A stretch of DNA of 64,000 nucleotides from Podarcis cretensis (Eukaryota): contig OX638153.1 of the NCBI GenBank assembly GCA_951804945.1, positions 95,604,001 to 95,668,000 on the forward strand. Direction: 5' to 3'. Of the stretch, positions 5,603 through 56,330 are shown piece after piece; position 1 is the stretch's first letter, and the number at the start of each line of letters is the position of its first letter. Below the pieces are notes generated by a model. That model was not told the origin of the DNA, ran no database searches, and saw nothing but the letters and a program-made list of their open reading frames with translations. A program made the position numbers and the translations under genes.

Positions 5603-7589
5603 GGTCGGAGCGAAACAATACAAACTTAAAGCTTTTGCAGATGACCTAGTTTTGACCCTGCAGGAGCCAGAATCTAGTACGAAAAGAGTGTTACAATTGA
5701 TTCAAGACTTTGGTCGGGTGGCGGGATTCAAATTAAACAAACAGAAAACTAAAAAAAATTTGACAGATACAGAGTCAGAACGGTTTCAGAAAAAGACAGA
5801 ACTAACTGTGGTTAAAAAAGTAAAGTACCTAGGGGTTAACATAACAGCAAAAAATCTGAGTCTTTTTAAGGATAACTATGAAAAATGTTGGTCTGAAATT
5901 AAAAGAGACTTAGACAGTTGGACAAAATTGAAACTTTCTTTGTTAGGCCGAATTGCTGCTATTAAGATGAATGTATTGCCAAAAATGTTGTTTTTGTTTC
6001 AAACACTACAGATTGTGGACAAGACGGAGTGCTTCCGGAAGTGGCAGAGAGACATCTCTAAGTTCGTCTGGCAGGGCAAAAAGCCCAGAATTAAGTTTAA
6101 GATATTAACTGATGCGAAAGAAAGAGGGGGCTTTGCCCTGCCAGACCTAAAGTTGTACTATGAGGCCGCAGCTTTCTGCTGGCTAAAAGACTGGCTACTT
6201 CTCGAGGACACTGATGTTCTGGATCTGGAAGGTTTTAACAATGCTTTTGGTTGGCATGCATACTTATGGTATGACAAGGTTAAGATCAATAAGGCCTTTA
6301 AGAATCATATTGTCAGAAAAGCAGTGTTTAATGTCTGGACAAAATATAAAGACTTATTTGGAAAATAAAACTCCAAGGTGGCTTTCACCGCTGGAAGCTA
6401 AGGCCCGAAAAAGACCCAGTATGGAGGCCAAATGGCCAAAATATTGGGAAATACTAGAAAAAGATGGAGACAATTGGAAATTGCAGAGTTTGGAGAAAAT
6501 GAAGGATAAAGTGCGAGACTGGCTACACTACGCTCAGATTAAAGAAGTTTTTAAAAATGACAAAAAGCTAGGGTTCCAGGTGGAGAAATCGAAGTTGGAA
6601 ACAGAACTGTTAGAGCCTAAGACTAAGGTACTTTCAAGAATGTATAACTTGCTGTTAAAATGGAATACACAAGATGAAATGGTTAAATCGGCTATGATAA
6701 AGTGGGCACAGGACATTGGGCACAACATTATGTTTGAGGACTGGGAAAGGTTGTGGACCATTGGGTTGAACTTCACTGCATGTAATGCTTTGAAGGAAAA
6801 TGTAATGAAAATGATATATAGATGGTACATGACCCCAGTTAAACTTGCCAAAATATACCATTTGTCTGATAATAAATGTTGGTAATGTAAAGAAAATGAA
6901 GGAACATTCTTTCACCTCTGGTGGACTTGCCCTAGAGTGAAGGCTTTCTGGGAAATGATATATAATGAGTTGAAAAAGGTATTTAAGTATACCTTCACTA
7001 AGAAACCAGAGGCCTTCCTTTTGGGTATTGTCGGCCAGAAGGTGTTAAGGAAGGACCGAACATTTTTTATGTATGCAACAGCAGCAGCAAGGATACTTAT
7101 CGCTAAGCACTGGAAAACCCAAGATCTACCCACACTGGAAGAGTGGCAGAAGCAGCTGATAGACTATATGGAATTAGCCGAGATGACTGACAGAATCCGA
7201 GACCTGGGAGAAGAGAAGGTTGAAGAAGACTGGAAGAAATTTAAGATTTATTTAAAAAAGCATTGTAATTTGGTTGAATGTTAAGAAGGATGCTAGATCA
7301 TAAATAATTGAGCACCACTAAACTAGATGGAATTAGGATGACAAGTGAGATTGAGGAAAAAACATAAACCTTTGGGAGGATTATTAGATTATATTTTAAA
7401 TGAATGGGATATAAGAATGTAAACAAGATGATAAATTGCGGGTAAGAATTGACAATGATGCAAGTGGGAGCGGGAGACGTGAGGGAGTCCAATGAAGTTA
7501 AGAAAATATGTTATGATATATGTTTCATTGTTTTTATTTCTGCATTTATGTTTAAAAATTTTAATAAATATATATAAAAAAATAAAAAA
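5603..7589 (+). mobile_element. 5'-truncated L1 LINE (RT C-terminal half, Cys-rich domain, 3' UTR, poly-A)
   Basis: KAFADDL, VKYLGV, GRIAAIKMNVLPK, RGGFALPDLKLYY; frameshift near 6360 and stop at 6883; 18-bp TSD TAAAAAGCACATCTTGCA at 5585 and 7590. Confidence 0.95.
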
Positions 7590-11200: not shown

Positions 11201-14200
11201 GCTTCCTGTGGTCCATCTAAAACGGCCTTTGCCAGCCTGAGCCCCTCCAGATGTTTTGGACTACAACTCCCATCAGCCATCTTGCTGTAGTCCTGACTGT
11301 TCAGTGTAAACTGTAAACCTTGTGGGCAAGCAGGACAGACTCTTGCTCTCTGTGAAAGTCTGCTGCTACTGTAGTTCTTAGCAATTTCAGATGGCAAAAG
11401 CAAGGTGCATGGGAACTGGAATGGGCCTTGTATTAACCGCAGGGATCAGTGGCACCTTTTATCTCTCTCCTCCAGCCTGGCAGTGTCTGTGAAGATGAAT
11501 ATCCTGCTCTTTGCACCGGGTCTCCTCTTCCTCCTCCTGCAGCGCTTTGGCCTGCTAGGAGCCATTCCCAAGCTCGCTATCTGTGCGGCCCTGCAGGTAA
11601 GGAATGGGAAGATTTGCCATGTCCAGATTCAACCCCTGGTATCTCCAGCCAAAAGGAATGGTAGGCCTAGGAAAGGCCACACGGCATGACAGAACAGACA
11701 ACACTTAGTCTACAGTGCCTGGTATTCCCAGGGGGTCTCCCATCCAAATAGTAACGAGGCCTGACCCTGCTTAGCTTTTAGGAGATCAGGCATGTTGAGG
11801 GTGGTATGACCATAGGCCAATACTTGTCTGATTCAGTTACTACCTAGTGACAGCAGAGCCAGGTCAAGGTGAAACACTTTGAAAATATGCACAGCTGTGA
11901 TCCTGTCTGTTGGATCATCAGGTTTTAGTTTTTAAAAAGTTTCCAGCTCTCGTTGTTTCTGCAAATAAGCAGGCAGAAACAAAGAATGTATGGATGAGGC
12001 TTCCAGTGATCATGGTGAGACTTCTGTCCAAATATATATATTTCCATATCACCCTGCTCCATCTCTAGCATTTTCTGGCCCATCCTCTCCTTGTCCTTGT
12101 ATTTGTGAATTTGTTTTGTGTGGTTGCACATCATTCCATGAGTTCAGTGCATGTGAGCGGTTACACAATACTCAGTGCATAACACTCAATTGCACAAAGC
12201 AAATAGTGGGTGTTTCCCCTGGTGTTTTATTTCTTAAATGGAAGGGAGAAATACAATTTATGAAGGATGCAGACAAGTAAGTTTCCCCTCAAGCAAACAT
12301 TAGAGAAGGCAGTTAATGTTGGCCAAGCTCGCAGATAGCTTTTTTGGCAAGGGAAACCTCATCGCTAGGTGCACATGAGGTTCAATTACTGTCTAGCAGC
12401 CATTAAGAGGAGGCTGCCCAAAATAAATGCAGCAGGTCTTTTGGAACTGATGCCGGGAAAGAAGCTGAACTGCAGCAAGAGGACCCCATAGATAAAGGAA
12501 GAAGGGAAGCAGAGATGGGAGGGATGGGCCAAGCAGTATTTTCACACCTGCATGACTTCCTCACAGCTACATTGCATCATGAGTTTTGTAGGTTTAAAGC
12601 AGCAGAAGTAGTAGCTTGTGTACCTGATGCTCCAGCATTTTGCTAAAAATAATAAAGCACTTCCTGGATGAATGTGCAGCAGAGCCTATGAAGTAACACG
12701 ACATGTCTCTAATTTTGGAACACAGAGTTGTATTAGCAGAACCCGAACCTGATTTCTGGCTTAGGTGGTAATATCAATCAGCAGTGACACTGGCTCATCT
12801 GCTGCAGCTGCAACCAAACATGTCTTTCCCATTTTACTTCACCCCCTCAGACGCACACTTTCATTGTCTTCCAAGAGAGACAGATACCTACAAGTGAAGC
12901 TGGCAGACTGAAGAATTGCAGTGAACTTAGCTTCCATAATTTGCTGCACTTGGAATGCCAAAAAGTTGCATTCATGTTCTTTGTGGGAGAATTTTAAGGC
13001 ACAGTTGTTTCTTGCAGGTTGTTTTGGGGTTGCCCTTCCTGGTGGTGAACCCTGTTGGGTACGTGTCCCGTTCCTTTGATCTGGGCCGACAGTTCCTCTT
13101 CAAGTGGACAGTAAACTGGCGATTCTTGCCAGAAGAGGTTTTCCAGCACCGGACATTCCACCTGGCATTGCTGGCCGCCCATTTAGCTGCCCTGGGGCTC
13201 TTTGCACTGAAGAGGTGGCACAGGTGAGAAGGTGGCATTATCACCGTGCTCAGGGGGCAAGTACGTGTGAAACTCAAATCTGGGAGAATCAGGCTCACAA
13301 TTTATGGGCTCTCAGAGAGAAAGAGATTTTGTTGTTGTTATAGCTTGTCAAAGAGCGAGCTTCTAATTCTCCAGCACTGGCCTGATACAAAGCAAGAGAG
13401 AAAATGGGACTTTGGGGGCACATACACAACCCACACTAAATCAGCCTTTGCAGGATTCTGCTTCAGTTCAGTGCAAGGGTGCAGAAACCACTTGCACTGA
13501 AAGTCAGTATCATGTGGTGCACAGAATGTGAAAGCTGGGGCAAGTTCTGGGTTCAAATCCCTACTCACCCATTTGAAGCTTAGTCTTAAGAACAGCCCCA
13601 CCTGATCTCAGCAGAGGTCCACATGTCCTAGGATCCTGTTTCCAAGGGGTTGAGCAGATGCTTGCAGGCATCTTATATATAGGGTGTGGAAAGCAGCAGC
13701 TGTTGTCTGTTTTTTGCCCCAGCACCTAGTTTTAAGAGAGAAACTGCCTAATTGGAGATCTGCTCTGTCACTCTCAGCCTAACCTGCCTCATGGATTAAG
13801 AAGAGATTATGCTAAACTGCCCTGAATAAGAGTTTACACTTCCAGCAGGAAGGGTTCCACTTTCTCATGGATTGCAACATATGCTTCTCTAACCCCTACC
13901 CTGCCCCCGAACTTCAGGTGTGATGAAAGCATCCTGTCACTGCTGAAGGATCCAGCTGAGAGGAAGAACCCTCCGCAGCCCCTCTCAGCCAATCATATCC
14001 TTTTGCCAGAGTGGTGGGGATGGTTTGCCACATGGTAAATGGTTTGTGTGATGGTACAAAAACGGCCCTTTTCTGTGGTGGGCCCCCACTTGTGGAATGC
14101 TCTCCCTGGCGAAGCTTCCTTGGCACCGAAGTTACTTATCTTTAGGCCCCAGGTAAAAACTTCCCTCTTCTCCTAGGCCTTTGGATAATTAAACAATTAA

Positions 14201-18811: not shown

Positions 18812-21800
18812 CTGTTACAAGGGAGAAGTTGGATGTGCATTTAAGCCAACCTTCTGAGTCCCTTAACAGTTCAGTGGGAAGTGCTTCTGTGCAAGTTCAA
18901 AGCTGTTTTGCAACTCCCTTTCATTTGAGAAGGCTTGTGCAGCAGAGATTTTTATGGGTTGTGCCAGGGCTAGGGAACCTTTAGCCCTCCAGATACTGCT
19001 GGACTACAACTCCCATCATCCCTGATCATACACACTGCTGGCTGAGGGCGATGGGAATTGTAGTTGGGAACTGCATACTCTTCTGGTTCATTCAGAACAG
19101 TCTTATTTGTTCTATAATAGCAATGATTTTATCTGTTATATAATTGTATATTAAACTGTTGAAACCTGCCCTGGGGCCTTATAGTGAAGGGCAGGGGAGA
19201 AACCTTATAAATATAATTAAAAGTCCAGCAGAAATCACATAAGATGGGCAACCAATGTGGGATAAAATGATGCTGCAGTGATCTAGGCAGTGGAAATGGA
19301 GAGGGGAAGAGAGGCTTACCAGTGGGAGATAGTCCTGAATGGCACTGTCACAAGAGGAGAGTTCACTTTCAGGGGTCAGACACTGGGGACGCAGTGCCAG
19401 GCCTTGACCCCGTCGCCGGCTGATGCTGAATCTGCAGAGACCAAAGTCACCCAGGTGAAATGTCATGTGATGTCACCAGTTTGTTCAATCAGGCTAGGGG
19501 CTCTTATAGTGCAGCCTTCTGTTTCTTACAGTGGCCAAGCAAAGCTGGATGGGCCAAGCAAACCATGAAAACAACCCTGTTCCCCAGCATCTGGTATACT
19601 GCCTCCATTCATAGGGGTAATTCTCAATGGCTCTTAACCCTGATAAGACTGGATCCTGCATGCACTGAGAAAGATGGACTGCAGGCTAGCTTCCTCTAGC
19701 CCATGCCAGGTTAACAAAACTCTCCTTTTAGGTGGGGCCTTCTACCCTCCTGTGTGGGGCTCTATATATAATGGAGGTGCTCAAGCATGTTTATATTAGC
19801 AGGTACGGGGTGGGTTGGAGGGTGTGGTTTTCCTCTCTAGGAAGGATTATTTCACACAAGTGCTTGCAGGCTTTAACAGGCTTCAAAATGTGTTGTAAAA
19901 TCCCAAATGCTGGGTGGAAGACAACAACATTACTCATAGAAAACAGAGCTTCAGCATCTCTGTTGCTCCACAGAGATCTAGTAGTGGAAGCAACTGTGTC
20001 TTCTGTCCTGATCCTTCCCTGCTCTTTCCACCTTATCGAAGACCACAAAATGCTCTGGATTGGGTCTTTCTCAGTTACGTATTTTGTACAGCACCTAGTA
20101 TGTAGATGGTGCTAATATTTTAGACGATAAGGGAGAGTTTCCAGAGCTAACTCAGCTGGGAACTTGTAGAGAATACCTACAGTGAGTTTTCTGTTGATCC
20201 TAAAAAAGATGATAAACTCTTAAGGATTTTGATTGGTGTTGCATGATATTGCGAACACTCTCAGAATGGTTGGTCAAAAGAACGACCTTCCTGCAAAGTA
20301 GCCTGTTGCATCTCTCAGGCTTGGAAGACTCACCTGGAGCCCACAAAGTTCTCCATTGATTTCTGGGAGCCCACAGAGACAGGAGAGGGACTGGAATCGA
20401 CACCTAGACCAGAAAGGAAGCAACTGGTTAGGAGCTGCAAAATAGCAAACAGCGATGGAGACCAGTGGTGCCCATGGGGACTGGTGGGGGTGGAAGGCAC
20501 GGTGACTGAGAGAATGTGGAGCCAGGGCCAATGCCAGGCAAAGCCAGCCAATTCTAGGTTTGTCCAAATCCTCCTCTGACTTTTATAAAGGCAACACTAA
20601 CTCGAAGGAGGAAGTTGACAGCCAGTGCTCTAGACTGTCAGAAGTCAGGCAGGTGGGGACTGGTTGAGGGCAGGCTGAGGTTGGCAGTGCCCCATTTGTT
20701 CTAACAGACCAGCCTTCACTGATTGAGACCACACAGCTTTACTTTCACAGGGCTGGCTATGGTAGCTACAGATTTATTGGCAGGGCTGCATCTTAATGCC
20801 ATTTGCTTAGGATCTCCTAGTTGATGCTACAGTGCCCTGCACAGCAAAACTCTTTATTCTCTCCATATAACAAAAGCAAAATAAGTTACAGAAGGAAAGC
20901 AAAAGTACACAGAGCACAAAACCCAACTTTTAGTGCTGTGGAACTTGATTTTGCCAATGTGGTGCAGTGGTTAGAATGTTGGACTAGGACTTGGGAGATC
21001 AGGGTTCAAGTCCTCAGCCACGAAGCTCGCAGAGTGACCTTGGGCCAGTCACTTTCTCTCAGCCTAACCTACCCCACAGGATTGCTGTGAGGCTGAAATG
21101 GGGAATGGAAAAACTCTGTGTGCTGCCTAGAGCTCCTAGAAGGGAAGGTGGGAGATAAATGTTATAAATAAATAGGGGATGAGTTTGTGGGCTCTTGAAG
21201 ATGATGTATTGATCAAGCCGTTCATCCTTTCTCTCCTGGAGATTAAATTATATCTGGTCTTCTGATTTCTAAGCAGAGCAGTTATATGACAAGGAGTACT
21301 TGTCTTGTATTTGTCCTGATTTGCTCGTGAAGCATTTATATATCTTCCTGTTAGGCCTTAGTTCATCCCACACTTTTCAGTGCATTTCTCCACTTTCCAA
21401 ACTGCATAAAAACTTGCTTTTTAAAAAGTGGATTTGTTGCACTAGGGTGACAGAGCCCTTTAATCCACTTTAATTGCACAAACCTAAGTTTGTGGTGTGT
21501 GCTTGATAGATTTAGGCACCCTAAATCTATTAAAGCACCTGGTTTAATGCAGCCTCTCCAGATCCTTCACACCCTCCAAACTGCTGTAAGACTTACCATC
21601 ATGACAGTTCTGCTTTTCTTGGTTGACAGAAGTGACACTAACAGGAAAAGAAGGAATCTCTTCTCGTTCTAGGAAGTAAAGAAAATTCCTGACATCAGAC
21701 TAACAACTGATAGAACCTGTAGAGAACTGGAGGGAAGTCGGGGGCATTCAATCTATTATTTTGTTAGCTGGCTATTTTATCCATTTATATACTGCTTCAT

Positions 21801-24800: not shown

Positions 24801-27800
24801 AAACCTGGAATGTACCAAAATTGTATGGTGGAAATGTCTGTAAATATTTGGGCTGCTCTCAGCAGTTTGCTAACAAAAGAAGCTGGTGAAAGCAGCCAGT
24901 TTTGTTCTGCAATCCTGCAGTGGAGTCTAATTGCTGCTCACTATCATTCTTTCTCAATCCTGATATGTTTAAACAGGCAGGTTAGATGCTATAAGCAGCT
25001 GGACTCCTTTCTCTTCCAAGGGAAAACAAATGAAGACAGGCTGCTCCAGATTTTGAGCACTTCAGGAAGGAACAGTGGAAGAACATGATTGTGCAATCTG
25101 TTGGACAACTGAATTTTTTTTAAAAAAGTTTCTAGCTCTCACGATAGAATTTATTCTCAAAACTAGATCCCTGATGAATCCTGGGGATTCAGATTCTGAC
25201 CTAAGAAGCAGACCTCTGCACATGCACTCCAAGCAGCCCTACCTGTGCTTCGAACCTCAAGGGCAGAGGGCAAGATCTCCTGGGTGGAGGCATCAACAGG
25301 CACCACAGAGGTATATATTGAAGGTGTGTTGCAAGCTTTGCTGGACTGGACAGCCTTAATGCGGAATCTTCGTGAGAAACCTTTGGAGGGGCAGAATCAC
25401 AGTGCTGGTTACAGTTAAGAGGGGAGGTGGATTTGAGATACAGGGTAGGCAAAGTTATGTATGCTTGTCTTTAAGCAAGTCCATATTCTTTGCGGCTTCA
25501 GAAATGAGCTTTGCAACAAGACCCAAGCCCACATTTAATAATCCGATTAATACTCATCATCTGTTTAAGTAGTCAAATTTGAGGCAGAATGGGCAAGTGA
25601 AGGGAAGGGCAGGCTTACCATGTTCAATCTCAGCTTCCCTTTGAGACACATTCTCATTATCCCGGATGACGGAGCCAGCAGTCAAGTGGTGAAGCAGTTT
25701 GTCCCAGCCCTTACTCTGCTGCTGCCACTGAGAAGGCTCCTCCTTGGCCTGGCTGTCTTTGGCAAGAAGCAGGGAATCCAGGGCAGCTGTCACTTCCCAA
25801 GAGACCGGTTTCCCTGCACTGAGTCCATGGATCACAACTTGGCACTGGAGAGGCAGCCAGGCACTGTTGTCACACTCTCCTCGCTCAGTTGCTGGTGATG
25901 GGCTGAAAAGGTATGGGGGTTCCAATAGCGTGTCCCAGTCTAGGTGGGCTGGTGACAGTAGGTTGCCTAGGAGAGAGCAAGGCGTGGGAATGCACACACG
26001 AGGCTCATCAGGTTTTGCAACAGGATAGAGTTTCCCGCAGGCAGACATCTCTGGAAGCTCACAAACACCCAGTTAGGAGTGTACACATCCCCAAGTTTGG
26101 CACTCAGAGACTTTCACTTGCCCTGCTGCTTTCCCCCAGGGGAAACCCAATCTTCACTGATGAATTGGAGCAGATGATATCAGTCGGGTTTTCTCCAGAT
26201 TGACGTTTGCTCTGATTTGGCACTGAAGATTGGGTTTCTGGGGGAAAGCGATGGGGCAAAGGTAAAACTGTTCAGACAAGTGGAAAACCACCCCAATCTC
26301 TGTTTTCTAGGCACGGGGGAAGTGTGGAAGAGCCTTTAGATACCACAACAGCTGGTATGACAGGAACCTTTGCAAGTGAAGGATCCAAGAGGACTGCAAG
26401 TACCTTCAATGGTTATTTACAGCAGGGATGGGGCCCTTCAGATGTTGCTGGACACCAACTCCCATCAGCCCCAACCAGCATAGCCAAAGGCCGGGGGTGA
26501 TGGGAGCTGAAGTCCAAGAGCATCCAGAGGATTGCAGGGTCCCTATCCATGGATTATAGCAAGGCAGTTGCTTGCAGACTGAGCATGAGGCATTTGCAAC
26601 CATATGGGACTCTGCTTCAATGATGGAAAGGTTTTAGTAGCTAATCTCTGGTCCCAAAGTCAGCAGGAAAGGTGCATTTTCCCCTGCCAACAGAAATGGC
26701 ACCTGAGCCTGCCAGGATTAGTCTGGCACCTACTGGCTGCAAATCCTGCAAAGCACTCTCCCCAGACTTGGAAGGCTTACAATCTGACCATAATCCCCTT
26801 CCTGATAGACGAGGCCTGCAGTCTTCGCTCTTCTGGACAGCCATCTGCACTCTACACAATGCTGGCCAACTCCGTTCCTAGTCACAAAAACCTTGACATT
26901 CAGTTTGTTCTGAGACAGGCTTTGGGCTTCCCCTGGCCCAGGTAACTCCCCAGTCAAAGGTGGGTATGGAGGGAAAAATTGAGCAACATCATTCACCACA
27001 AAAACAAACAAACCGCTCTACAGATGGACGAGAGCTTCTTCTAAGTCCTGCCAAGTCTTGGAGCAGGGAGGGGATGATACAGATATATCAAGACGGGTTT
27101 CAGGCAGAGGACATCCCCAGCTCTACCTGGTGATGTTATGGGGTTGAACCTGGGATCTTCTGTCACTGAGCTACAGCGCAGAACTGGAGTGGGGGATAAA
27201 CTAACAGGGATGTTATTTGCACAAGACTTAAGTGGGAAGAATAACAGACACCAAGATGCCACCCCCAGCAGATGGCCCACATGCAAGTCTCAGCCACTCT
27301 TGCTTTCTCTCATCTTGCATGGGGCTTCTTGCCCCCTCTGCTCTCCCAACAGGAGACTTCCACGTTCTTCTTCCCCACCACTCACTGGAATCAGCAATGC
27401 TTCTGCGCATCTTCTGCAACTCTGGCCCAATCTCATCCAGTTTCCCTTCCAGGGAACGGTTCCGCTTCTGGGACACCTTCTCTAGGGCTCGGCGCAGCCG
27501 ATGGGCATCCAGCTCACCATGTGGGGAGGAGAAGCTACGTCCAGACAGAGCAGCTCGGGCCAAGGCCTTCTTCCTTCGCACCAGCTCCTCGGAGCTCAGG
27601 GCCGCAGACACCTTAAGAGAAAGGGAGGGCGAGAAGGTCAATGCTGGGAAAACTCTAAGGAAGCATGTCAAAGATCACTGTAAGAAAGCAAATGCCCTTC
27701 CCTTGTGCAGATCTAATGCCGGGCCTACTGCATCTCTACACCTGAGGAATAATCTTCCATTCTCTCCCTCTCACACACAAAGCTCTTCCAACCAGTTTAT

Positions 27801-39359: not shown

Positions 39360-42300
39360 GCATCAGGAGCATATACCTTGATGCCTATTCAGTAAATATG
39401 TCAGGTTCGGTCCTTGGCATCTTCAGGCAGGGCTGGTGGAAAACCCCTGTCTGAACCCCAGGCAAGCTGCTGTCAGCCTGTATGGACACTGCTGACCTAG
39501 TATAGCACCAATGGCCCGACTTTCTAAAAGACAGCTTCCCATTTCCCAATGCTCTGTTTACCTTGATCCCATCAACGCCAGGGCCACTCATGCTTGTACT
39601 CTGGTCAATGAGGAAGAGCATTTCGCGAGTGATGGTCTGGAAATCAGTGGAAACGCAGCTGGCCTCAGGGCAGAAATTCAGCATCAGGACAGGATTGTGA
39701 AAAATGTCTTTGTGGAACCTCTTCTGTACAAAGGCAACCTAGGAGCAAAGAAAATATGTTGTGGCTTCAACCTTTCCTTCCCGATATCATTGTATATTAT
39801 CATGCAATGTGGAGGTTGGTACAGTGCAAATGCACTGGCAGGAGCACCAGAATTTCTCCAGCAGTGTGTGCGCACTGCACTGACTTCACGGTCGCCTTGC
39901 CCCATCCCTTCTATCTCCCATCCCCTCTACCTTCCAGTAAGCAGCAGCAATGTGACCAACCAGAGTTCAGCTGAGCAGCAGCATCCCTACCACACCATGT
40001 GCTTCTTGCTCAGCCATCAGGCCAGAGAATTTACAGTTAGAGGTGACAAAAAGCAAGGTATTAAGGTGCTACTGTCTAGGTCCTAGTCATTTCAATCCAA
40101 CTTGAGACCATCCTTAGACAACCAAGGAAAAAAATTCTCTTCCTAGATGGTTACCTGTCTCTCCCAATCATCTTTTTTGGCAATACGAGCATAATCACGG
40201 CGGCTCCTTATTTGTGCCTCGTAGTCCTGATATGAGATAGCACCATCTTCTATGATGAGGTGTGGATGATGAGGTTCTTAGGGGAGGAAAATGTAAAGCT
40301 GCATGAGAGTCAGAATGATCCAGTGCACAGACAGCTTGGCTGTTTGGACCTAGGTTCAAAACCAGGTATGGACTCAAAACTGGTAGCCTCAGGCAACTCC
40401 CAGTCTCATTTCCACACCTGTAAAATAGGAATAAGAATAACCTCCTCCTTTATGTAGAGGGTCACCAGGAACAGCCCATCAGGTGGCAACTGACACCACA
40501 TGGAGCAGGTTAAAGTAGCTTCATTATGATAGATGATTGACATGCACCAATCCTAAAATAAGTATATCTGTGGGTTGCACTTTGAGGGCCCCTTCTGATG
40601 CTACATGAGCAGCATGGATATTACTGCAGGGAGTATCTTCCCTCCAGAGGTCACAGAAATAAGAGAATCAGCTCTTAAAACACTACACAGGTGGTATCTT
40701 ACCCCACATAATTTGCTATATAGTTGTCTGAATAATCTGCCTAGCTTCATATTTATAAAAATTCTTAAACACATCATCTGGGCTAGTCTGGTTGTTCTTG
40801 CTTGAGATTTTGTGTTTAGTCCATAACTACCTAAATAAAAATGTCATGACAAAAATAATATATTAAAAAGTCCACTGTTCCCATAAAGCAGAGACACACT
40901 AGAGCAGCTCCTATGCCAGGTTTGGCCAAACCTGGCCCTCCAGCTGTTTTGGGACTACAACTCCCACCATCCCTAGCTAACAGGACCAGTGGTCAGGGAT
41001 GATGGGAACTGTAGTCCCAAAACAGCTGGAGGGCCAAGTTTGGCCATGCCTGTCCTATGCCAACCTCAGAAAGGACCCCAAGAGGCATTACAGAAGCTGT
41101 GCGTGTGTGCTATAAAATAAAAGTTCAGAAATTAATGTCTCTCAGTCGCAATATATTGTTGGTATCTGGGTACAGAACTAAAGATCTGGAAGATTAAATT
41201 GTTCAGTCCTAAGGCTCCCCAGTCGGATTATCACCCCTACATTCCCCCTTGCAGTGTGTATTATACATTAGCATAAGGTTCCATTGTTGTAGCGATCGCA
41301 GAATCCCTTGACTTCAAAGTGTTCTCTTACCACAAGGATACAAGATAATCTCCAGGTTCCTGTCACATCTGTGCTTCTCTGCCAAGGTGATGCATATAGT
41401 TGAGGCAGAGCTGGCAAAAGGATTAGCATCAGCCCGAAGAGCATGGGATGGGCTCTCCAATCCTGCAATAACGAGAGGATTTTATTGCCTGCTGTAATGT
41501 AATAACCTCTAAAGCAGGGGTGGGGGACATTTGGCCCTCCAGATGTTGCTGAACAACAACTCCCATAATCCTCACAAACATGATCAATGGCCAGGGATAA
41601 TGGGAGTTGTAGTTCATCAGCATCTGCAGGGCCAAAGGTTTCCCACTCCTGCTTGAAAGTGTGTCAGATGGAAATGGATGCATTTGTTTAACAGCACCAA
41701 GCAAGGCCTCGTTACCACGCACTTGTGCTCACTTGAAGACTTGGCATCAAGTGATGACCAACATGTGTGGATGAACGAACTTGTACATCAATTAGATCTC
41801 AGACATAAACAGAGTAGATTTAAATGGAAACAGATCACATGTTTGACAGAGAATAATTGATCGCTGAGTAATGGAATGAACACACACACAAATCTGCCCT
41901 TGGAGATTAGATAACAGCAATGCAATAGAGGCATTCTTCTTCCATGCCTCTTCAAAGAATAAGAATCAGGTAAGGTGGCTAACACAGTAATTTTTTTTTT
42001 TTTAAATCTTAAAAATCAAAACTATATATTGGGGGGCGGGACCAAACCTAATCTAACAGCAGCCAAACAGTGACAAAAAACCTCATCCTCCTCCATCTTC
42101 AGATATTTATCTAAATAATACTTATTTAAAAAGAAGTTTCAGTATTTAGCATCTTTACAATCTGTTTTCACTAAGAAGAAATTGCTGGTCCCTATGGCTG
42201 CAAAGGCAAAGCACTGCAGTGAGCGTTCAGTGTAACTCAGGAGCCAGAAGAGGGCTGTAAGATTTCTAGTGCTCAGCGTGTGCCCTCTGAGTTGCAGAAG

Positions 42301-43888: not shown

Positions 43889-46193
43889 GGAGCAAAAGCA
43901 AAAGTGAATCACCTGCATTTCCCGTAGTCCTGGATAATGGAAGGAATGAAAGGGCATTGCAGCCATTGCATTTACTTCTGGATCAAGAGCGGACAGTAGA
44001 AGGAATCTGCTCCCTGTCACTGTTGGCATTTTGGTTTCTATCAGATTCTCACTTTTCCAATCTCAGGTTCAGTTCTCCACATTTCTGCATGTGTTTGTGA
44101 TATATATATATATATATTATATGTGGTTTACGTGGGGCTTTCGTGGGTTTATGTGGGGCTTTCTGTGGCTTGATGTGGAAGCTGCAGTTAGCGCAGAATG
44201 AGACCCTGGCATCACAGAACACCTGTGCTCACAGCTCTGCACTGGTTGTCAATCTGCTACTGGGCAAAGTTCAGGGTGTTGTTGCTGGCATCTATCTGTC
44301 TCAAGGGACAATAGAGAGCGCCTCCCGGGGTGAAGTCAAACTGCTGTGTTAGCGGCACCAAAGTGACCTCCCTGGGGCGCAAGCCTCGGCAGTGTGTATG
44401 GAGGCCCTGGGCTGCCGAGATGCCTCACTGATTGGGTCCAAAGGAAAGAAGAGCAATACATTTGGCAGCAGCTTGGCTGCAGGAGTTATTGGAAGGAGGT
44501 GTCCAACCATCTTAGGGAGTCCACTCCGGATTTGTGTAGGGTTTACTCCTTAGCCCTTTCTTCTCCCAAAGATATCCCACAAGGCAGTGGAGGTTTAGAA
44601 TCAGAGTTTTCCTTCTCTTAGATGGGCTACCTTCCCAGGCTGATGATGAGCTCCATCCGCCCCTTTAATGTGTTACTGTTAGAATATAAAGCCCTTAACA
44701 GCTAGGGACCAGTTTACATGTGAGATTGCCTCACATCACATGTGCCCACTTGAGCATTTCGATTGGTAGAACTGGCACTGCTACAGGTGCCACAAAATAT
44801 TCATTCCACATTTGTTTAGTGTGGCAGCACATACACTTTGGAACTCTCTGCCTCTTGAGATCAAGCAGGCACTTTCAGTGTACTCTTTTTAGCGTCTTGT
44901 TTAGACAATCCTATCGATGCTTAGAAAGTTGATGTGAATTTTAAACTGTTTTAGTATTTTAACTTTTTGTCTGTTTTAAAGTATTGCATTTTTTCTTGAT
45001 TTTCTTGTTTTATCTTTTTGTAAACTGTTTTGAGGGTTTTGTTTTGTTTTCGCAATCAAGTAGCGTATAAATTAAATAAAGAAATAAGCCTATCTAGATA
45101 CGCTTAACCTTAGATAAGGTTAATATGTGTTTTAATTTGGTTTTAAACTTATCGATTTAAATTATTCTTTGAATGTTTTAAATAGTTGTTTTTAACTGTT
45201 TTTGCTGATAATTTTATTGTTTTATTCTTTTTGTAAACCACTTTGGATTTTGTTTTTTTAAAAACAACAACAAAAACACACAACAATCAAGTCATAGAGA
45301 ATCCTCAAAAAATGTAGTTAAGGGCTTTGGGAACTATAACTCTGTGAAGTCAGCACCATGAACAAACTACAGTCCCCATGATTTTTTTGGGAGACGCTGT
45401 GACTGTTAAAATTGTATGCTTTAATTGTAATCCTGTGCATGTGACCGCAAATGCAAAACACACAGAAATTAGATACTAAATCATACCTGCCAGCAAACAG
45501 GGTCCTTTAACAAGCATCTCAAAGCTGAACTCGTAAGGAAAGGCATTGTAAACCTCACCCCTGAAGATGTCTGTATCCTGGGGAGGCACAAGGAAAGACT
45601 GCTCACTCTTCAGAGTAGTGGATCCAAAACAACTGGCAGAGCTGATGGAGAAGGAGGAAGAGAGAGAAAAGTCACAAACTAGAGCTGTCTGGCATGCATG
45701 GCGGTTGACCTTATTGTGGGAGTTCTTGGGCAAGGGATACATTTGCTAATCACAACACAGCCCAAGGCCTGCAAAGAGGCCTCCTGCGGGCAGGGAAATG
45801 CAACTACAGCCGAAAGTGAATTTGGAATACAGCTTATTTATTTTTAAAGACAATCTGCCCAGGAGTTTAAATCACTTAGCTCCATATAGACATTTTCCAA
45901 AAGAAACAGACAGATGCGGAAAAAAAGAAACTTTGTTTTCTGCAGGAGAAATTCTGCGGCTGGACCTCTGTTGCAACACATGGGGGCATATTTACAAGAG
46001 CAACTAATCAGAATCAGGGAAGTTTTCGGAAACTTTCACCTCAGTGGGAGGGGCCTATTTTTGGCAGCTATGTTCATATGGGTTGAGGTGTGAATTTGGT
46101 GTGCTGCTATCATAGCTTAGTTGGATCTGTGCAGATGAGCTGAAAACAATATATATATATTTCCACAAGCATATGGTGAAACTACTGTGTTTC

Positions 46194-46233
<40 letters not shown>

Positions 46234-49200
46234 GAAACACAGTAGTTTCACCATATGCTTGTGGGAAATTGCAGTCAAATACAACTAGCAAGCATAAAGC
46301 TAATTAAGTGTATGAAGAGGTTAAGACAATAAAGCTGTGTTTCCTAGACTCAATTCGGTCACACTCCCTCTTCTCTGATGAGGGAGGAAGTGAAGCCTTC
46401 TCTTCCTGTTCCCTCTCTCTCCACGCCATGTAACTGATCAACGAAGAAGTGTCTTAAGCTTTACTTCAAGCTTAGAGCACATGTTTGAAGCTCTCTCTCT
46501 GTATTTTTTTTTAATCCAACAATATTCTGCCTGTGTTCTCCTTGCTACTGCTTGAATAAATGCATGAATCTGACCTTTGAATCTGTAAGTAAAGCATTTT
46601 GAACTTCCTTGGCAGTGTGTGGCCTGTTCCTTGCAAGAGAAGTAGAAAGAAGGAAGCGCTTTGCAAGGGGGCTAAATGGGATATGCAAAAGGTTTAGGAA
46701 CCTGCATTCCTAACACTTTACTGTGCTGCTTAACATTTGTGACTTTAAACGCTCCTACTGGGTGTTCTGGGATACGGGTGGCGCTGTGGGTAAAACCTCA
46801 GCGCCTAGGACTTGCCGATCGCATGGTCGGTGGTTCGAATCCCCGCGGCGGGGTGCGCTCCCGTCGTTCGGTCCCAGCGCCTGCCAACCTAGCAGTTCGA
46901 AAGCACCTCTGGGTGCAAGTAGATAAATAGGGACCGCTTACCAGCGGGAAGGTAAACGGCGTTCCGTGTGCTGTGCTGGCTCGCCAGATGCAGCTTGTCA
47001 CGCTGGCCATGTGACCCGGAAGTGTCTGCGGACAGCGCTGGCTCCCGGCCTATAGAGTGAGATGAGCGCACAACCCTAGAGTCTGGCAAGACTGGCCCGT
47101 AAGGACAGGGGTACCTTTACCTTTTTTTTACTGGGTGTTCTCTCCTGCTGGAGAGTGAGTTTAGCCCTGCATTTTGAATCCAGGCAACCAACTGATTCTT
47201 TTGTTCTTTACCCAACACACACAGAGGTCACAGGGATTCATATTTTTCCTCCCACATTGCTGAACTCTGCACAGTTGCAACCAAGCTGTTTTCAACACAT
47301 CAATTTGTAAAGGGGTTCTGAGAGAAGACTGCTAGACTTGAACACTAGCCTGTACATTTAAATTTCCATTCTCCCACTGTGGCAAAAGGTCATAAGTTGC
47401 TATTCTAAAACCATCAATCCAGCCTTTGTCCAATGCTCCACTGAAGGACACAAGAGGGACCTCAACAAAACGTTGCACAGTGGAGTGCCCTCCTGCACCA
47501 TACTCCATTCCATTCCACCTCCCATCTAGTTTGCATTTTTTGATCCAATGTTAGTTAGTATTCTGGGCCCACAAAGCATGCTCAGTCCTTCTTTGGCTGT
47601 TTTAAGGATCCCTCCTTTCCACTTAGGGTTTCCTCTGGGCATGCTGATGATTCCCTCTTATGAGTGAGTGGTGTCATTTTGGTTCAATAAGCAGAGGCAC
47701 TCATAAACTTAACCTTGGATATAAAAGGGATGCTGCTGCTGCTGAGTCATGTGACTCCCAGCCAGTTTCTAATTGGCTCAGGCTCCCATTATCAATTATT
47801 TGTGCCACACTCCCATTTGCTAGAGAACCCATATGAGTCAGCAGGAAAGCTCTGATTCCTGCAACCTACACACACCGTAACTACTTGCCAGCTGTCAGTG
47901 GTCCCTATAACCTCCTCCAGTCCCTACCCTTCGCATAGCATAGACTCTGAGAAAGCCATGAAAATCACCATAGGGCCAACCTGTCGTCACATAAGCCTCT
48001 CGCCTCACTTTCACTTTCGGGGATGGATACAGCGAAGGGCGTGAGCACAGATGGGAAGAGGACACGTAGGGCGCCGTTTGCCAGGGTTGCCAGTTCCCGA
48101 CTGCTGCTGAAGACTACAGTCAAGGTTTCCGAGGGCCCAACGGGGCCTGTGCTGATGATGAACGTGGAACGTGCTAAGTCTTCGTCAAGGATCAAGTGAC
48201 CTGGGCAGAAAGCAGAGAGGAGGTAGCTAGGATGGTGCCTCCTATACACTCATGAGGGAAGCTAATGCCTTTACTTTATCACTGTCTTGGAGCCACACTT
48301 CTCACTGAGTTACCCATACAGCAAGGTGAAGACTGGAGTCATTGCACAGCCTTCATTTCCTGTTCTGATTTGAAAGTTACCATTGGAATGGCAGCACCTC
48401 TGTGCAGGTGGGGGAGCCCCAAATACTCTTCATGATTATCTCACTTAAGTTTCTTGGCACTATATCTATTGGCAAACTGTGAGAACGGTTAGGTCAAAAG
48501 CCGCAGATTTACCTGTGGCTGCCTAGTTCTCTTCATGGAAAACTCAACCTATCCACTTTAGCACACATCAGCCGAGGCATCCCCTTGGGATTTAATTTAA
48601 TGAACAGCTCAACAGTGGGAAATTTACTGAGTGGCTTCATATGCATTATTTCTATGACTTATAGACAGACACCCTGTTGGGTAGTCCAGTATTATTATTC
48701 CGTATAGTACAGAAGGAGTGATGAAGGATAGTGGCTTGACCAAAACCAACTAATGCTAGATTGTGGTTACTAGATGCGTTCACAGCAGAGCTGAGATTTG
48801 GGGCATGACTCATAGCTCATGCCTTTTAGCAGCTTTCTAATGGATCATTGTAGCCTACCTTGAGTTCTAGCCTAGGGATAGAGCTCTTGGGATGGAAAGC
48901 TGAACTATTTATTGCATGAAAGCAGAAGAAAAATCACCTTTGGCTAACTCTTCCATAACCCCCAAAATGTGAAACTGCCTTGAATTGATGTCTTTGCTTC
49001 AAGCCCCACCTTGCTATTCATTTCAGCAGTGCCAGAGGCAGAGCACTGCAAGGAGATGTTACCACAACCAACCATTGGTGCAGCAGAGCGGCTGGTTCCA
49101 GCTTGCATTACAATCAATGCAGCAGTCCTCCACACTGGGCCGGTTCTGGATCTGGAATGTGGAGGTTCTGTTTCCTGTTATAGCTTCAAAGCTTGAGACC

Positions 49201-51887: not shown

Positions 51888-52655
51888 TAATAATAATAAT
51901 AATAATATTTTTTATTTATACCCCGCCCTCCCCAGCCAAGGCCGGGCTCAGAGCGGCTTACAAACAATAATAAAAACAAGAAGAATGATTACAACTTAAA
52001 AACAAAAATAAAATACAACATTAAAATAATGGAACATTAAAATATTAAAATGTAGCCTCATCGCAGGAGGAGAAGGAAAAGAAAGAAAAAGAGAGAGAGA
52101 GAGAGAGAGGGAGAGAGAGGGAGGGAATCAAATTGGCTCCAAGCCAAAGGCCAGGCGGAACAACTCTGTCTTACAGGCCCTGCGGAAAGAAATCAGATCC
52201 TGCAGGGCCCTGGTCTCATGAGGCAGAGCGTTCCACCAGGCCGGAGCCAGAGTTGAAAAGGCCCTGGCTCTGGTTGAAGCCAATCTGACTTCCTTAGGGC
52301 CCGGGACCACTAAGGTGTTGCTATTTATGGACCTTGAGGCTCTCCGTGGGGCATACCGGGAGAGGCGGTCCCGTAGGTATGAGGGTCCTAGGCCGTGAAG
52401 GGCTTTAAAGGTCAAAAGCAGCACCTTAAATCTGACCCTGTACTCCACTGGGAGCCAGTGCAGCTTGAAAAGCACTGGGTGAATATGCTCCCATGGCAGA
52501 GACCCCGTGAGGAGCCTCGCTGCAGCATTCTGTACCCGCTGGAGTTTCTGGGACAGCTTCAAGGGCAGCCCCGCATAGAGCGAATTACAGTAGTCAAGCC
52601 TGGAGATGACCGTCGCATGGATCACTGTGGCCAAGTCGGGGCGGGAAAGGTAATC
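51888..52655 (-). mobile_element. L2 LINE 3' fragment (open C-terminal ORF)
   Basis: DLATVIHATVISRLDYCNSLYAGLP...LQRVQNAAARLLTG...HWLPV...WNALP. Confidence 0.92.
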
Positions 52656-52656
52656 A

Positions 52657-52701
<45 letters not shown>

Positions 52702-52779
52702 ATGTGAACAGGGTGGAAAATAAGTGTCCCATTCTTAAAAACCGACACCTTCTCCAATTGTGTGTACAGTGTCTCTCAA

Positions 52780-53467
52780 AACAACAACAAACCAACCTAT
52801 AGTCATGTAAAGCATACTCAATAAATACATGAGACGTAACTGGCTGTGTTCTTAGATAAATAAGGTATACTATTCATGTATCAAATCATAAATTTCAACA
52901 GAAGTAACTCATAAAGTTCAACAGACAAACGAACAAAGCAGAAGACCCAGTGGATCAGATCATTCTCTGATCAGGTCATGCATAAGGTCCATGCGTGTAA
53001 GTGTCTATTCCACCTGTCTGTTCATAAGGTCCAAACAATCCACATGAAGGGTTGTTGCAGTTCCACAGAATCCTTTCACAGTAGTAGCAGCTACTACTAT
53101 GCCAGAAGATCCACTGTCCTGTAATATCACATATGAGCTTTAACTACTGATGAAGCCCAGGACGGTGAAACAAGGCCAATATTCCAGAAATCCTTGTCTT
53201 AGACTCCGTGAAAGGATTCTGTGGAACTGCAACAACCTTTCACGTGGATTGTTTGGACCTTATGAACAGACAGGTGGAATAGACACTATTACACGGGTGG
53301 ACCTTATGCATGAACTGATTAGAGAATGATCTGATCTACTGGGTCTGCTTTGTTTGTCTGTTGAACTTTATGAGTTACTTCCGTTGAAATTTATTATTTG
53401 ATACATGAATAGTATACCTTATTTATCTAAGAACACAGCCGGTTACGTCTCGTGTGTTTATTGGTTA
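52780..53467 (+). mobile_element. Penelope-like / retrozyme-like non-autonomous insertion with long inverted arms
   Basis: 15-bp TSD TACAGTGTCTCTCAA (52765, 53468); inverted arms 52819-53081 and 53206-53463; hammerhead core in the loop. Confidence 0.8.
53127..53211 (+). ncRNA. Type I hammerhead ribozyme motif
   Basis: CTGATGA (53147-53153), A, stem II GCC-caggac-GGT, GAAA (53167-53170), stem III ACAAGG/CCTTGT, GTC cleavage triplet (after 53198); interrupted stem I. Confidence 0.75.
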
Positions 53468-56330
53468 TACAGTGTCTCTCAAGCATTTCAGGCAGGGCAC
53501 AATTCCCAACACTGCCTGAAGATCCTTGGAATTGAATCCAGGAGCTTCTGCATGCAAAGCAGATAGTCCACCACAGAGCTACACCCCTTCCCAGAAGAAG
53601 ACTGCAGAAGAACTAGGAAGCGGGCTCTCTCAGAGTTTGCCACAACAGAATAGCATGGCTGTAGCAATATAAAGAGTTGCTGCAACCAAACTAAGGGCTT
53701 TTCTACACTTAGCTCCCTCTGCTCTATCTAGGTTCGGTCCGCACTTTAAAGCTCCATGTCAGAGTGCCCCCCTTTTTTTGCTCTGGAGCTATTCCTGTGA
53801 AAACCTGTTCTCTGAAGTTCAATTGGAGCAAATGGTAATATGCGGAAAACCCAAATTATTGTTTACACTGATTCAGCATTAAAGAGCAGTTTTTTGTAGG
53901 GAAAGATCCAGAGTAGAGCAAAAGGTAAGAGTGGATAAGCCCGATGTTGGGAACATAATCGCCTGTACAGTTGTCTTTAAAATCTTTGGTCTTTTTAATG
54001 ACTCTTTTTTGTCTGGGTGCAGTAGCTAAAAGATATCCATAGCAAGGGTTTTTGACAGTAAATCAGTTATTTAAACAATAGGTCCCCCTCATTTTTGAGA
54101 TATTCTGTAGAGGCTTTACACCAGGTATCTTCACTCAAAAAGATCTAGCAGTGCCCAGAACAGGACTTTGTTGTAGTTGCCCCACAGCCTGCTGTACACA
54201 GACATGACTGTTTAGTGGAGCCTTATGTTAGAGTGACATTGGCTCTTTCAACTCCCATCAGCCCCAGCTAACATGGCCAATGATCAAAGATGACTTTTGG
54301 GCTGGGGTATTGTTTAGGGAGTTTTGTTGAGGAGGAGTTGTTGCTGTTATTGATATTAGTTTGTTGTATCTTTATTTTATGCTTTATGTGGAAATTGTTC
54401 AATTTGGTTGTATACGTTTTGATGTTCTACTTATTGTTTATGACTGTCTTTATTATGGTTGTAATTAATTTTCATGCTGTAAGCCACCTTGAGCTTTTAA
54501 CTTTGGAAAGGAGGCCTACAAATAAAATGACTGATTGATGATGGGACTTGTAGTCCAGCAAATGCCACAGGTTCTCCATCCCTGCTCCAAGGAGTTGATC
54601 ACAGCATGCATAGTATACCAGGCAGTTTCCCATCTACTGCTAACCAGATCTACTTCTACATAGCTTCAGAAGCAGAAGCAGAAGCCTAACATATAGAATC
54701 ATGGAGCTGGAAGGGACCATGACATGTTCAGACCATATTCTTTGCTGCAAATGTTTAAACTTTCATAAACCACCACCTACCCAAGACAAGGCAAAGGCAG
54801 AAGCATGGACAGCAGAGGTTAGTACCTGCAGGCAAACCTGGAGAAGTTGTGAAAAGCTCAGAGATGTGACACACATTCTCACCCAACTTCCTGGTAGCTG
54901 AAAGCTGGAGCAGAGTCAGAAATAATGAGCCAACAGAGCAAACTGAATGGAGTTTTATTTTCAGGACTGGAATATAAGGACATTATTCTAAATAGGATTA
55001 TCTGAGATACTTCACTAGCTGTCCGTAGACTGCCCTTATTACACTAAGCTACCCCCCTCTCAGGTCACACCCCCTCCCACAACTTTTGAGGTTATGCCAA
55101 CTGAATTATTACACGCACTCTTGAGATCCTCTCTCTGGTCCAGGACAAGAGGTCTAAAATGGGAAAACAGACTACTGGTGCCAATGACATATTTAATTAT
55201 AATAGGTATTAAGATGGAGCCTCCTGCTGGGGTTCACTGCCTAGTCTTAGTCTTGCCATGCAGACAAGAAATTTAAATTTTGATCTAGAACCCACAAACC
55301 TAATGAAATGCCCAAACTCACTCTAGGCTGTGATGCTATGAGAATGCTGGTTTATATCTTGTAAACTGTTGTTCTGTGACAAATTTTTCATTGATTGAAA
55401 TGTTTTTACTGTATGCTACTATTTTGGTCAATTGTATTTTATACTTTTACTGTTTTGTTTTTATGGCAAACCATCTAGAGCAGGCTTCTTTGTCTTGAAA
55501 GGAAATATATTAAATAAAATAGACAAAAGTTCAACTTGAGAATGAAATAAAGGAGAGACTCCTTTCACTCACCTTCTTGGAGCAATTTGATAGACGCTCA
55601 CTTGGGAGTTCCCTCTACTAAGACTACAATGTATTTGATCACATGAAAAATTCAGCCTAATATATCAGTTGTCCCCAAAACTGGGAAAACCCCTATAGTC
55701 AAGTGAAACCTCCAATCCAATAGCTTGTGCGGTGTGTGAGACCTCCAGCACTCCTTACCCCTGTTTCTTTTCAAAAACGGTGGAGCAAAATTAGAACTAA
55801 ACCAGTCCTGTTTGCCCCAGGTGAATACTTTTAACAACAGAGGGTTGGGAACATTTGCTAATATACCATGATGAGTTACAGTAAATAATTAATATGATAC
55901 ATGTTCAATACATAAGTGCAGGTCTCTTAGTGATGCAGCAAGAGCAGGAGCAGCTGCCAAGACAGCTGAAAGGTTTGGTGTGCCATGTTCTGTTTGCTCC
56001 CTTTCCCATTCACAAAATATGGGTCACATACCTGCAATATGGGTTTCTCGGTCATAAAGACAAATTAGCAAGATCCGCTTTGTAACAAAGCAAAAGATTT
56101 TGTCCATTTGTTCATTTAAAAAAAAATATGGGAAACAGTAGCAAGCTAAAGTTATTCCTTGCTCAGGGATTGGCCAGAGACATCTTACACTCAAGGGGTG
56201 CCTGCCCCCCCCCCCAAAGCCAGGGTCCCATACAGTCGCTGCCTCCTGTGCTACTTGGCCTCACCCAATCTCCCACTCTTTTGTTGCCCTACAAAGTTAC
56301 CCAACACACAACTGAGCATTAAGGGCTTAC

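Follow-up and report, generated by a model that had tools for sequence, protein, structure and literature searches.

A fold-back insert with a hammerhead-like motif in Podarcis cretensis is probably an old, dead Penelope-type retrotransposon insertion

Does a short fold-back insert that carries a hammerhead-like motif in its loop represent a new ribozyme-bearing element, or is it a copy of a retrotransposon type that is already known? The question is raised by a 688-bp insert (positions 52780-53467, between exact 15-bp direct repeats) in Podarcis cretensis contig OX638153.1 (assembly GCA_951804945.1); all coordinates given here are positions within the 64-kb stretch of that contig that was analysed, which we call the window, and the features of the insert are collected in Table 1. 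Our analysis indicates that this is probably an old, dead insertion of a lizard Penelope-type retrotransposon, made up of two inverted copies and containing a decayed hammerhead motif. The insert is an ordinary representative of a known kind and no new ribozyme element.

Table 1. Features of the insert and of its target site duplication (TSD)
Feature	Positions	Strand	Description
TSD, left copy	52765-52779	none	TACAGTGTCTCTCAA, exact match of 53468-53482
Tail, 3' end of inverted copy	52780-52813 (~34 nt)	-	left end only
Left arm, inverted 5'-truncated copy	52814-53081	-	93.5% identity to reverse complement of 53206-53467
Palindrome, inner junction of the two copies	53077-53101	none	12-nt arms, 92% complementary, 1-nt spacer
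Loop	53082-53205 (124 nt)	+	unique sequence, contains hammerhead motif
Hammerhead-like motif, type I order	53147-53198	+	own descriptor; by-eye comparison with Poseidon_Ac; no Rfam match
Helix III hairpin	53170-53197	+	53170-75 with 53192-97, six Watson-Crick pairs, 16-nt loop
Right arm, 3' part of sense copy	53206-53467	+	tail absent
TSD, right copy	53468-53482	none	TACAGTGTCTCTCAA, exact

The preliminary description of this DNA had reported a 688-bp insert with a 15-bp TSD, and within it inverted arms around a 124-nt loop. Both are borne out, the repeats being exact at both positions and the arms (~265 bp) reaching about 5 nt further outward than had been described. A 23-nt direct repeat considered as a longer TSD was rejected; its additional bases are right arm sequence, so the TSD is 15 bp long. 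The two copies of the ~265-nt segment are inverted relative to one another, with their 3' ends outward and their 5' ends meeting centrally; the left arm starts at 52814/5 and its inner end is equivalent to 53206 of the right copy, while the right arm ends 269 nt past the predicted hammerhead cut. When the arms are aligned with one another 244 of 261 positions are identical, and they differ by 12 transitions, 5 transversions and two indels (7 and 2 nt). The ends of the insert are asymmetric in that the 34-nt tail, which is GT-rich on its sense (-) strand, has no partner in the right arm; poly(A) is absent from the insert. Local alignments give no significant match between the loop and either strand of the arms, and we take the loop to be the stretch by which the longer right copy (sense +) reaches further 5'. 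Derivation of helix III or the loop from a scrap of inverted arm was considered and dropped, as the local alignments are no better than those of shuffled sequences. No other copies of the insert are found by BLASTN (word size 9) within the 64-kb window, nor is a second copy of the flanks (a paralogous empty site) present within it. Exact 24-28-mers of the arms and a degenerate core pattern have no match in viral, metagenome and prokaryote contigs, as is expected for lizard DNA. The neighbours of the insert are other repeats.

This arrangement is familiar from the Penelope-like elements (PLEs), whose insertions are recognised by a pLTR hammerhead, by a 5'-truncated copy in inverted orientation and by a tail of 30-40 bp that is present at one end (PMC8557442); when they insert, both target strands are cut and extended, and the ~34-nt tail is the sequence between two RT start sites (PMC11167929). 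In metazoan PLEs, pairs of motifs or of copies have been reported on opposite strands at distances of 100-700 bp (PMC4209133). The window insert has a flanking TSD, an inverted 5'-truncated copy that abuts a second one, 3' ends that point outward and a tail of ~34 nt on one side only. The outward 3' ends make the + strand the sense strand of the right copy, and it is this strand that carries the hammerhead-like motif in the loop. TSD, inverted copies, tail and sense-strand motif all match the PLE signature, in agreement with the Penelope-type retroelement reading put forward in the preliminary description. The ATT cleavage motif reported for Poseidon_Ac (PAc), a Penelope/Poseidon-clade PLE of Anolis carolinensis (PMC11167929), is absent from the flanks. 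Since no linked RT or GIY-YIG ORF and, in the window and the contigs searched, no second copy was found, membership of the PLE family rests on the architecture together with short, post hoc similarities to Poseidon_Ac.

The insert has no coding capacity, and stop codons are common to both arms. A 60-aa ORF that starts in the hammerhead core (53150-53329) has no word-sharing homologues; its stop is present in both arms, and the only matches in a full HMMER search are multi-repeat TPR_10 and Kelch proteins, which we set aside as chance similarity summed over repeats. No RT or GIY-YIG ORF is linked to the insert; the window contains a single RT, of L1 type, at a distance of 47 kb. In truncated PLE copies an ORF is not expected.

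The hammerhead core elements had been described as lying in type I order, and every one of them is present at the position given. The core CTGATGA (CUGAUGA in RNA) occupies 53147-53153 and is followed by an extra unpaired A (53154), by a 3-bp helix II (53155-57 with 53164-66; pairs G:U, C-G and C-G), by GAAA (53167-70) and the helix III hairpin, and by a GUC triplet that ends at 53198, after which the predicted cut falls. The conserved type I core nucleotides are all there (C3 U4 G5 A6 N7 G8 A9, G12 A13 A14, the A15.1-U16.1 pair as A53170-U53197, and H17 as C53198). The G10.1-C11.1 pair is absent, with G53155:U53166 in its place, preceded by the extra A53154. This extra base is no oddity, because PLE hammerheads characteristically have a base left unpaired where helix II begins on its 5' side (PMC4209133). 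The suggestion in the preliminary description that GGU derives from GGC, U53166 being a decayed CpG, is plausible; the site is a CpG position, and CpG sites account for 6 of the 17 differences between the arms. Stem I is interrupted, as had been noted, and its pairs exist as described if U53199 is bulged, but their energies sum to +2.9 kcal/mol and the stem is unstable.

Helix III alone has a predicted energy of -4.3 kcal/mol and is retained in the MFE folds; helix II is weak (-1.5 kcal/mol). The hammerhead fold as a whole comes to -4.6 kcal/mol, compared to -16.4 kcal/mol for the best fold, and is thus 12 kcal/mol worse than the MFE. The motif also has a competing hairpin. A comparison with the Rfam hammerhead models, proposed as a check in the preliminary description, gave no support: cmscan at E<=10, run with no positive control for PLE-type hammerheads, finds no hammerhead family in the 1-kb region, in the 64-kb window, or even when given the 116-nt core. 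The missing Rfam match, the unfavourable fold, the unstable stem I and the G:U at 10.1/11.1 suggest that the hammerhead copy in the window is probably catalytically dead.

Poseidon_Ac is like the window insert in its TSD-flanked insertions with inverted copies and a ~34-nt tail at one end, and in its type I hammerhead, which lies on the sense strand and leaves a base unpaired after A9; the ends of helix II (GCC..GG(C/U)) and the GAAAC..GUC are also alike. The Poseidon_Ac consensus reads CUGAGGA-U-GCC..GGC-GAAA-CG-UC, followed by TTCTGGAAC and ACAACAACC, and the window copy reads CUGAUGA-A-GCC..GGU-GAAA-C(24 nt)G-UC, followed by TTCTGTGGAAC and CAACAACC. The latter two words span 53217-53237 of the right arm and resemble the words downstream of the Poseidon_Ac hammerhead, so that TTCTG(T)GGAAC and CAACAACC are common to both elements past the cut; this comparison was made by eye and concerns short motifs, beyond which overall sequence similarity is absent. 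The two also differ. Where Poseidon_Ac has the 2-nt CG, the window copy has a 6-bp helix III hairpin with a 16-nt loop, which puts 24 nt inside the GAAAC|GUC of Poseidon_Ac, and its helix II has 3 bp in place of 6. From the cut to the 3' end the window copy measures 269 nt and Poseidon_Ac about 55-90 nt; the RNA at both 3' ends is GU-rich in the former and AC-rich in the latter, and the region past the motif contains an ORF only in Poseidon_Ac. The minimal hammerheads of metazoan PLEs share with the window copy the type I order and the location in the PLE terminal repeat (Cervera and de la Pena 2014, PMC4209133), but their helix III is missing or has 1-2 bp with a palindromic loop and their helix II has 6-8 bp (PMC4209133), the reverse of the window copy with its long helix III and short helix II.

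Two of these differences speak for another reading, in which the insert is a distinct protein-less, ribozyme-bearing (retrozyme-like) element that is copied in trans by PLE enzymes and whose stable helix III allows monomeric cleavage. The 270 nt past the motif are non-coding, with stops common to both arms, where Poseidon_Ac has its ORF, and a helix III-like hairpin of Watson-Crick pairs follows only 8 of 760 GAAA sites in the window (~1%; 0.7% in shuffled sequences, and 4-4.5% if G:U pairs are permitted). Like the insert, metazoan non-LTR retrozymes and hammerhead satellites are short repeats that are AT-rich and non-coding and carry type I hammerheads, and where they have TSDs these exceed 4 bp (PMC7229834). 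We nevertheless consider this reading unlikely. A single 5'-truncated copy fits a truncated copy of a longer element equally well. In metazoan retrozymes, units of 150-450 bp, each with a hammerhead, are repeated in tandem, head to tail, and give rise to circular RNAs (PMC7229834), unlike the window insert, in which a single motif is found, without a second hammerhead, and the copies are inverted and not in tandem. The argument for monomeric cleavage draws on helix III by itself, and it is set against a hammerhead with no Rfam match, whose fold lies far above the MFE, whose stem I sum is positive and whose 3-bp helix II contains a G:U pair.

The motif could also be a coincidental string in a fold-back of some other class, either a DNA transposon or MITE with long terminal inverted repeats or a twin-primed LINE or SINE. 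No covariance model supports the hammerhead, the descriptor with which it was searched was composed after the motif had been seen, and target-primed LINE/SINE insertions usually have TSDs of ~15 bp, the length found here. We think it very improbable all the same. The motif at 53147-53198 is the sole match of the descriptor in the window (a minimal-hammerhead descriptor finds no other hammerhead motif there either), with 0.27 matches expected by chance per 64 kb on both strands for a lenient descriptor and 0.005 for a strict, reader-like one, and the probability of a chance match inside the 124-nt loop on the sense strand is roughly 3e-4 or less, 3e-4 being about the value for the lenient form. 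Both the 34-nt tail on one side only and the inverted duplication belong to the PLE signature. In twin priming it is different portions of an element that become inverted, with no single segment duplicated, and here the same 265 nt are duplicated, which argues against it. TSDs of the DNA-transposon superfamilies are roughly 2-11 bp long; a DNA transposon or MITE, which should have symmetric terminal inverted repeats that extend to both ends and a short TSD of constant length, was rejected on the grounds of the 15-bp TSD and the asymmetric ends, one of which has the unpaired tail. The absence of poly(A) also weighs against a fold-back of another class. Co-option by the host, whether for self-cleavage at the site or for the 260-bp hairpin of double-stranded RNA in a transcript, is the least credible reading of all, for although the insert would fold to a very stable hairpin if transcribed (-463 kcal/mol, z = -66), the drift of the arms looks neutral and includes indels and decayed CpGs, the outer partners of stem I are part of the right arm, so that in a read-through transcript they would be paired to the left one, and the insert sits among other repeats.

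If the insert is a Penelope-type insertion, as we believe probable, its origin may be pictured from in vitro work with the Anolis Poseidon enzyme (PMC11167929). Its GIY-YIG endonuclease would have nicked each strand of the target, with 15 bp between the nicks, and reverse transcription of the element RNA would then have been primed from the two 3'-OH ends. One priming, at the distal internal start site, would have produced the tail, and the other would have begun at the proximal site. The two cDNAs, 5'-truncated at different points, would have been joined by template switching, of which the palindrome at the inner junction (53077-53101) is possibly the scar. The hammerhead would be the pLTR ribozyme of the parent family, with the PLE-typical unpaired base after A9 and an extended helix III.

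The shorter inverted copy starts at the position that corresponds to 53206, only 8 nt past the predicted cut, and this raises the possibility that it is the run-off cDNA of a hammerhead-cleaved RNA and that the other copy came from uncleaved RNA. We regard this as a long shot; in the case of the Anolis element, neither RNA-seq nor in vitro work detected hammerhead cleavage of that kind (PMC11167929). If it were true, and if helix III, single-motif cleavage and a piling up of arm ends at the cut were found family-wide, such fold-backs with a hammerhead in the loop would record in the genome that hammerheads cleave in vivo while Penelope elements retrotranspose. By itself the insert carries little weight, since repeats of this type are common in lizard genomes and this is a single decayed copy. 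The metazoan PLE hammerheads published so far are of the minimal form; they cleave poorly, and only as dimers. If the features seen here recurred across the family, there would be a PLE-type hammerhead in a vertebrate whose helix III is real and which could act as a single motif, and the position of the inner end of the inverted copy, a few nt from the cut, would then bear on whether hammerhead cleavage occurs in vivo and shapes PLE insertions.

The copy in the window most likely has no function of its own. Drift since insertion amounts to ~3.4% per arm, and a rough estimate places the age of the insertion on the order of tens of millions of years.

The 688 bp at 52780-53467 lie between two copies of the exact direct repeat TACAGTGTCTCTCAA (52765-52779 and 53468-53482), and the outer parts of this insert are mutually inverted copies. 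Global alignment of the left arm (52814-53081) with the reverse complement of the right arm (53206-53467) gives identity at 244 of 261 aligned positions (93.5%). The 17 differences, six of which fall in CpGs, comprise 12 transitions and 5 transversions; the alignment also contains two indels (7 and 2 nt) and yields a K2P distance of 0.069. The 124-nt loop (53082-53205) is unique, as local alignment to either strand of the arm gives nothing better than shuffles do. The 15-nt target-site duplication (TSD), inverted arms and loop of the preliminary description are thus borne out. The left end has an extra ~34 nt (52780-52813) that lack a counterpart at the right end. Within the arms there is a tandem duplication of 20-23 nt (52883-52925 and 53357-53376), which must predate the insertion because both arms carry it. 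The predicted RNA fold of the insert is a single long hairpin (-463 kcal/mol, z = -66), and no second copy of the element is present in the window.

This architecture agrees with the signature published for insertions of Penelope-like elements (PLEs), in which an inverted 5'-truncated copy lies beside the main copy, a tail of 30-40 bp is often found on one end only, and the pseudo-LTR (pLTR) carries hammerheads (Craig et al., PMC8557442). With the Anolis Poseidon enzyme, both target strands are cleaved and both are extended (Frangieh et al., PMC11167929), and reverse transcription begins at two internal sites, the ~34 nt separating them being the tail (PMC11167929). By analogy, two cDNAs, one primed from each nick, would give just the arrangement observed, namely two copies with their 3' ends outward, a tail on only one of them and unequal 5' truncation points, and the stagger between the nicks would set the TSD length. 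The 3'-ends-outward geometry predicts that the + strand is the sense strand of the right copy, and it is on the + strand that the hammerhead motif is found. We therefore read the element, from its resemblance to such insertions, as a probable Penelope-type insertion carrying a relic hammerhead; the interpretation first offered is partly supported, in that the Penelope-type retroelement stands on this architecture and monomeric cleavage is made doubtful by the lack of an Rfam match and the weak fold. PLE-type insertions with hammerheads are already known, and the present copy is one more member.

At the inner junction, a 12-nt palindrome (53077-53088 with 53090-53101) suggests template switching. 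The inverted copy starts at the equivalent of 53206, 8 nt downstream of the predicted cut after 53198, and its next 7 nt differ from the expected run-off sequence. Such nearness to the cut (a ~4% coincidence, in one copy and spotted post hoc) could, though less probably, be the footprint of a cleaved template.

Every hammerhead element named in the preliminary description was found at its position, as follows.

Elements of the hammerhead motif in the loop of the insert
Element	Position	Strand	Basis
Hammerhead core CUGAUGA	53147-53153	+	sequence
Extra A	53154	+	sequence
Helix II, 3 bp (G:U, C-G, C-G), 6-nt loop			
GAAA	53167-70	+	sequence
Helix III, six Watson-Crick pairs, 16-nt loop	53170-75 with 53192-97	+	
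GUC	ends at 53198	+	

The extra A is no anomaly; an unpaired base at the 5' end of helix II is a stated hallmark of PLE hammerheads (PMC4209133). Motif descriptors were run against the window, with 200 first-order Markov simulations providing the chance expectation. A lenient descriptor (CUGANGA with or without an inserted base, a helix II of 3 bp or more in which G:U counts as a pair, GAAA, a helix III of 4 bp or more, U then H) has a chance expectation of 0.27 per 64 kb on both strands, and one like the preliminary description 0.005; the window holds exactly one match, the loop motif. The probability that a chance match to the lenient descriptor falls in the 124-nt loop on the same strand is ~3e-4, which is optimistic because the descriptor was drawn up after the motif was known. 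A Watson-Crick-only helix III of equal quality follows GAAA at ~1% of sites (8/760 in the window, 0.7% in shuffles).

Several observations count against a working ribozyme. A search with Rfam models gave no hammerhead family at E<=10 at any of three scales (the 1-kb region, the whole window and a 116-base stretch containing the motif). Folded as a hammerhead, 53127-53211 has -4.6 kcal/mol versus -16.4 for the MFE structure; stem I alone has +2.9 kcal/mol and requires a bulged U53199, and helix II has only -1.5 kcal/mol. A competing hairpin (53184-53222) is predicted to sequester the 3' strand of helix III, and read-through transcription would be expected to leave the outer stem I partners (53206 onward) paired with the left arm. 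Judging from these predictions, efficient self-cleavage of the present copy is quite improbable. Assuming that the arms began as identical copies, each has since diverged by ~3.4%, which we take to mean, roughly, an age in the tens of millions of years at rates usual for squamates; about 2 substitutions are expected in the 52-nt motif. The earlier proposal that helix II GGU decayed from GGC is reasonable, since the U at 11.1 occupies a would-be CpG, but unproven.

The closest comparison is with Poseidon_Ac, a Penelope/Poseidon-clade PLE of Anolis carolinensis, whose consensus across the pLTR/ORF junction reads CUGAGGA-U-GCC..GGC-GAAA-CG-UC (supplement, PMC11167929), with TTCTGGAAC ~13 nt after CG-UC and ACAACAACC further on (PMC11167929). 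In the window copy the sequence is CUGAUGA-A-GCC..GGU-GAAA-C[24 nt]G-UC; 18 nt after UC comes TTCTGTGGAAC, with CAACAACC 2 nt beyond, a two-word pattern found in the window only in the two arms, against a chance expectation of no occurrence. This likeness, compared by eye and post hoc, is suggestive, not proof, of homology between the ribozyme region and Poseidon_Ac. Read in this way, helix III resembles a 24-nt hairpin lodged inside the CG of Poseidon GAAACGUC. The two differ in that the 3' end after the cut is 269 nt in the element versus roughly 55-90 nt in Poseidon_Ac, and the RNA at both 3' ends is GU-rich (predicted) rather than AC-rich; unlike Poseidon_Ac, the element has a short helix II and no ORF after the motif.

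A 60-aa ORF (53150-53329) begins inside the hammerhead core and has a stop codon common to both arms. It has no word-sharing homologues, and its only full-HMMER matches, TPR_10 and Kelch repeat proteins, arise via summed repeats and were rejected as spurious. The shared stop and the lack of credible homologues indicate that the copied segment was non-coding at insertion, which is compatible with a non-autonomous derivative as well as with a PLE of different layout. The only reverse transcriptase in the window, far from the insert, is a fragment at 5565-6365 (+) that matches Pfam RVT_1; a Penelope enzyme is ruled out, as it is of L1 type (best solved relatives LINE-1 ORF2p, E 3e-36).

The neighbours of the insert are other repeats. 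To its left is a minus-strand ORF (52128-52700) that has no Pfam match, and whose product probably resembles the C-terminal part of LINE proteins; a (TG)n microsatellite (52660-52700) adjoins it. A weak tRNA-like structure (53517-53588, minus strand; 17.6 bits, below threshold), 35 nt to the right of the insertion, is probably a tRNA-derived SINE head; the insertion may therefore have occurred within or next to another repeat. Elsewhere, a full-length 5S rRNA match at 11707-11817 (-) scores 51.7 bits versus the Rfam gathering score of 38 and could represent a 5S gene, a 5S pseudogene or a SINE derived from 5S. Four copies of a ~84-nt palindromic repeat (18993-19076, 26441-26524, 40943-41026 and 41541-41625), unrelated in sequence to the element, match one microRNA-precursor model on both strands and look like a MITE-type family. 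A near-perfect hairpin with a (TA)n centre (46162-46265) matches many microRNA-precursor models, also on both strands.
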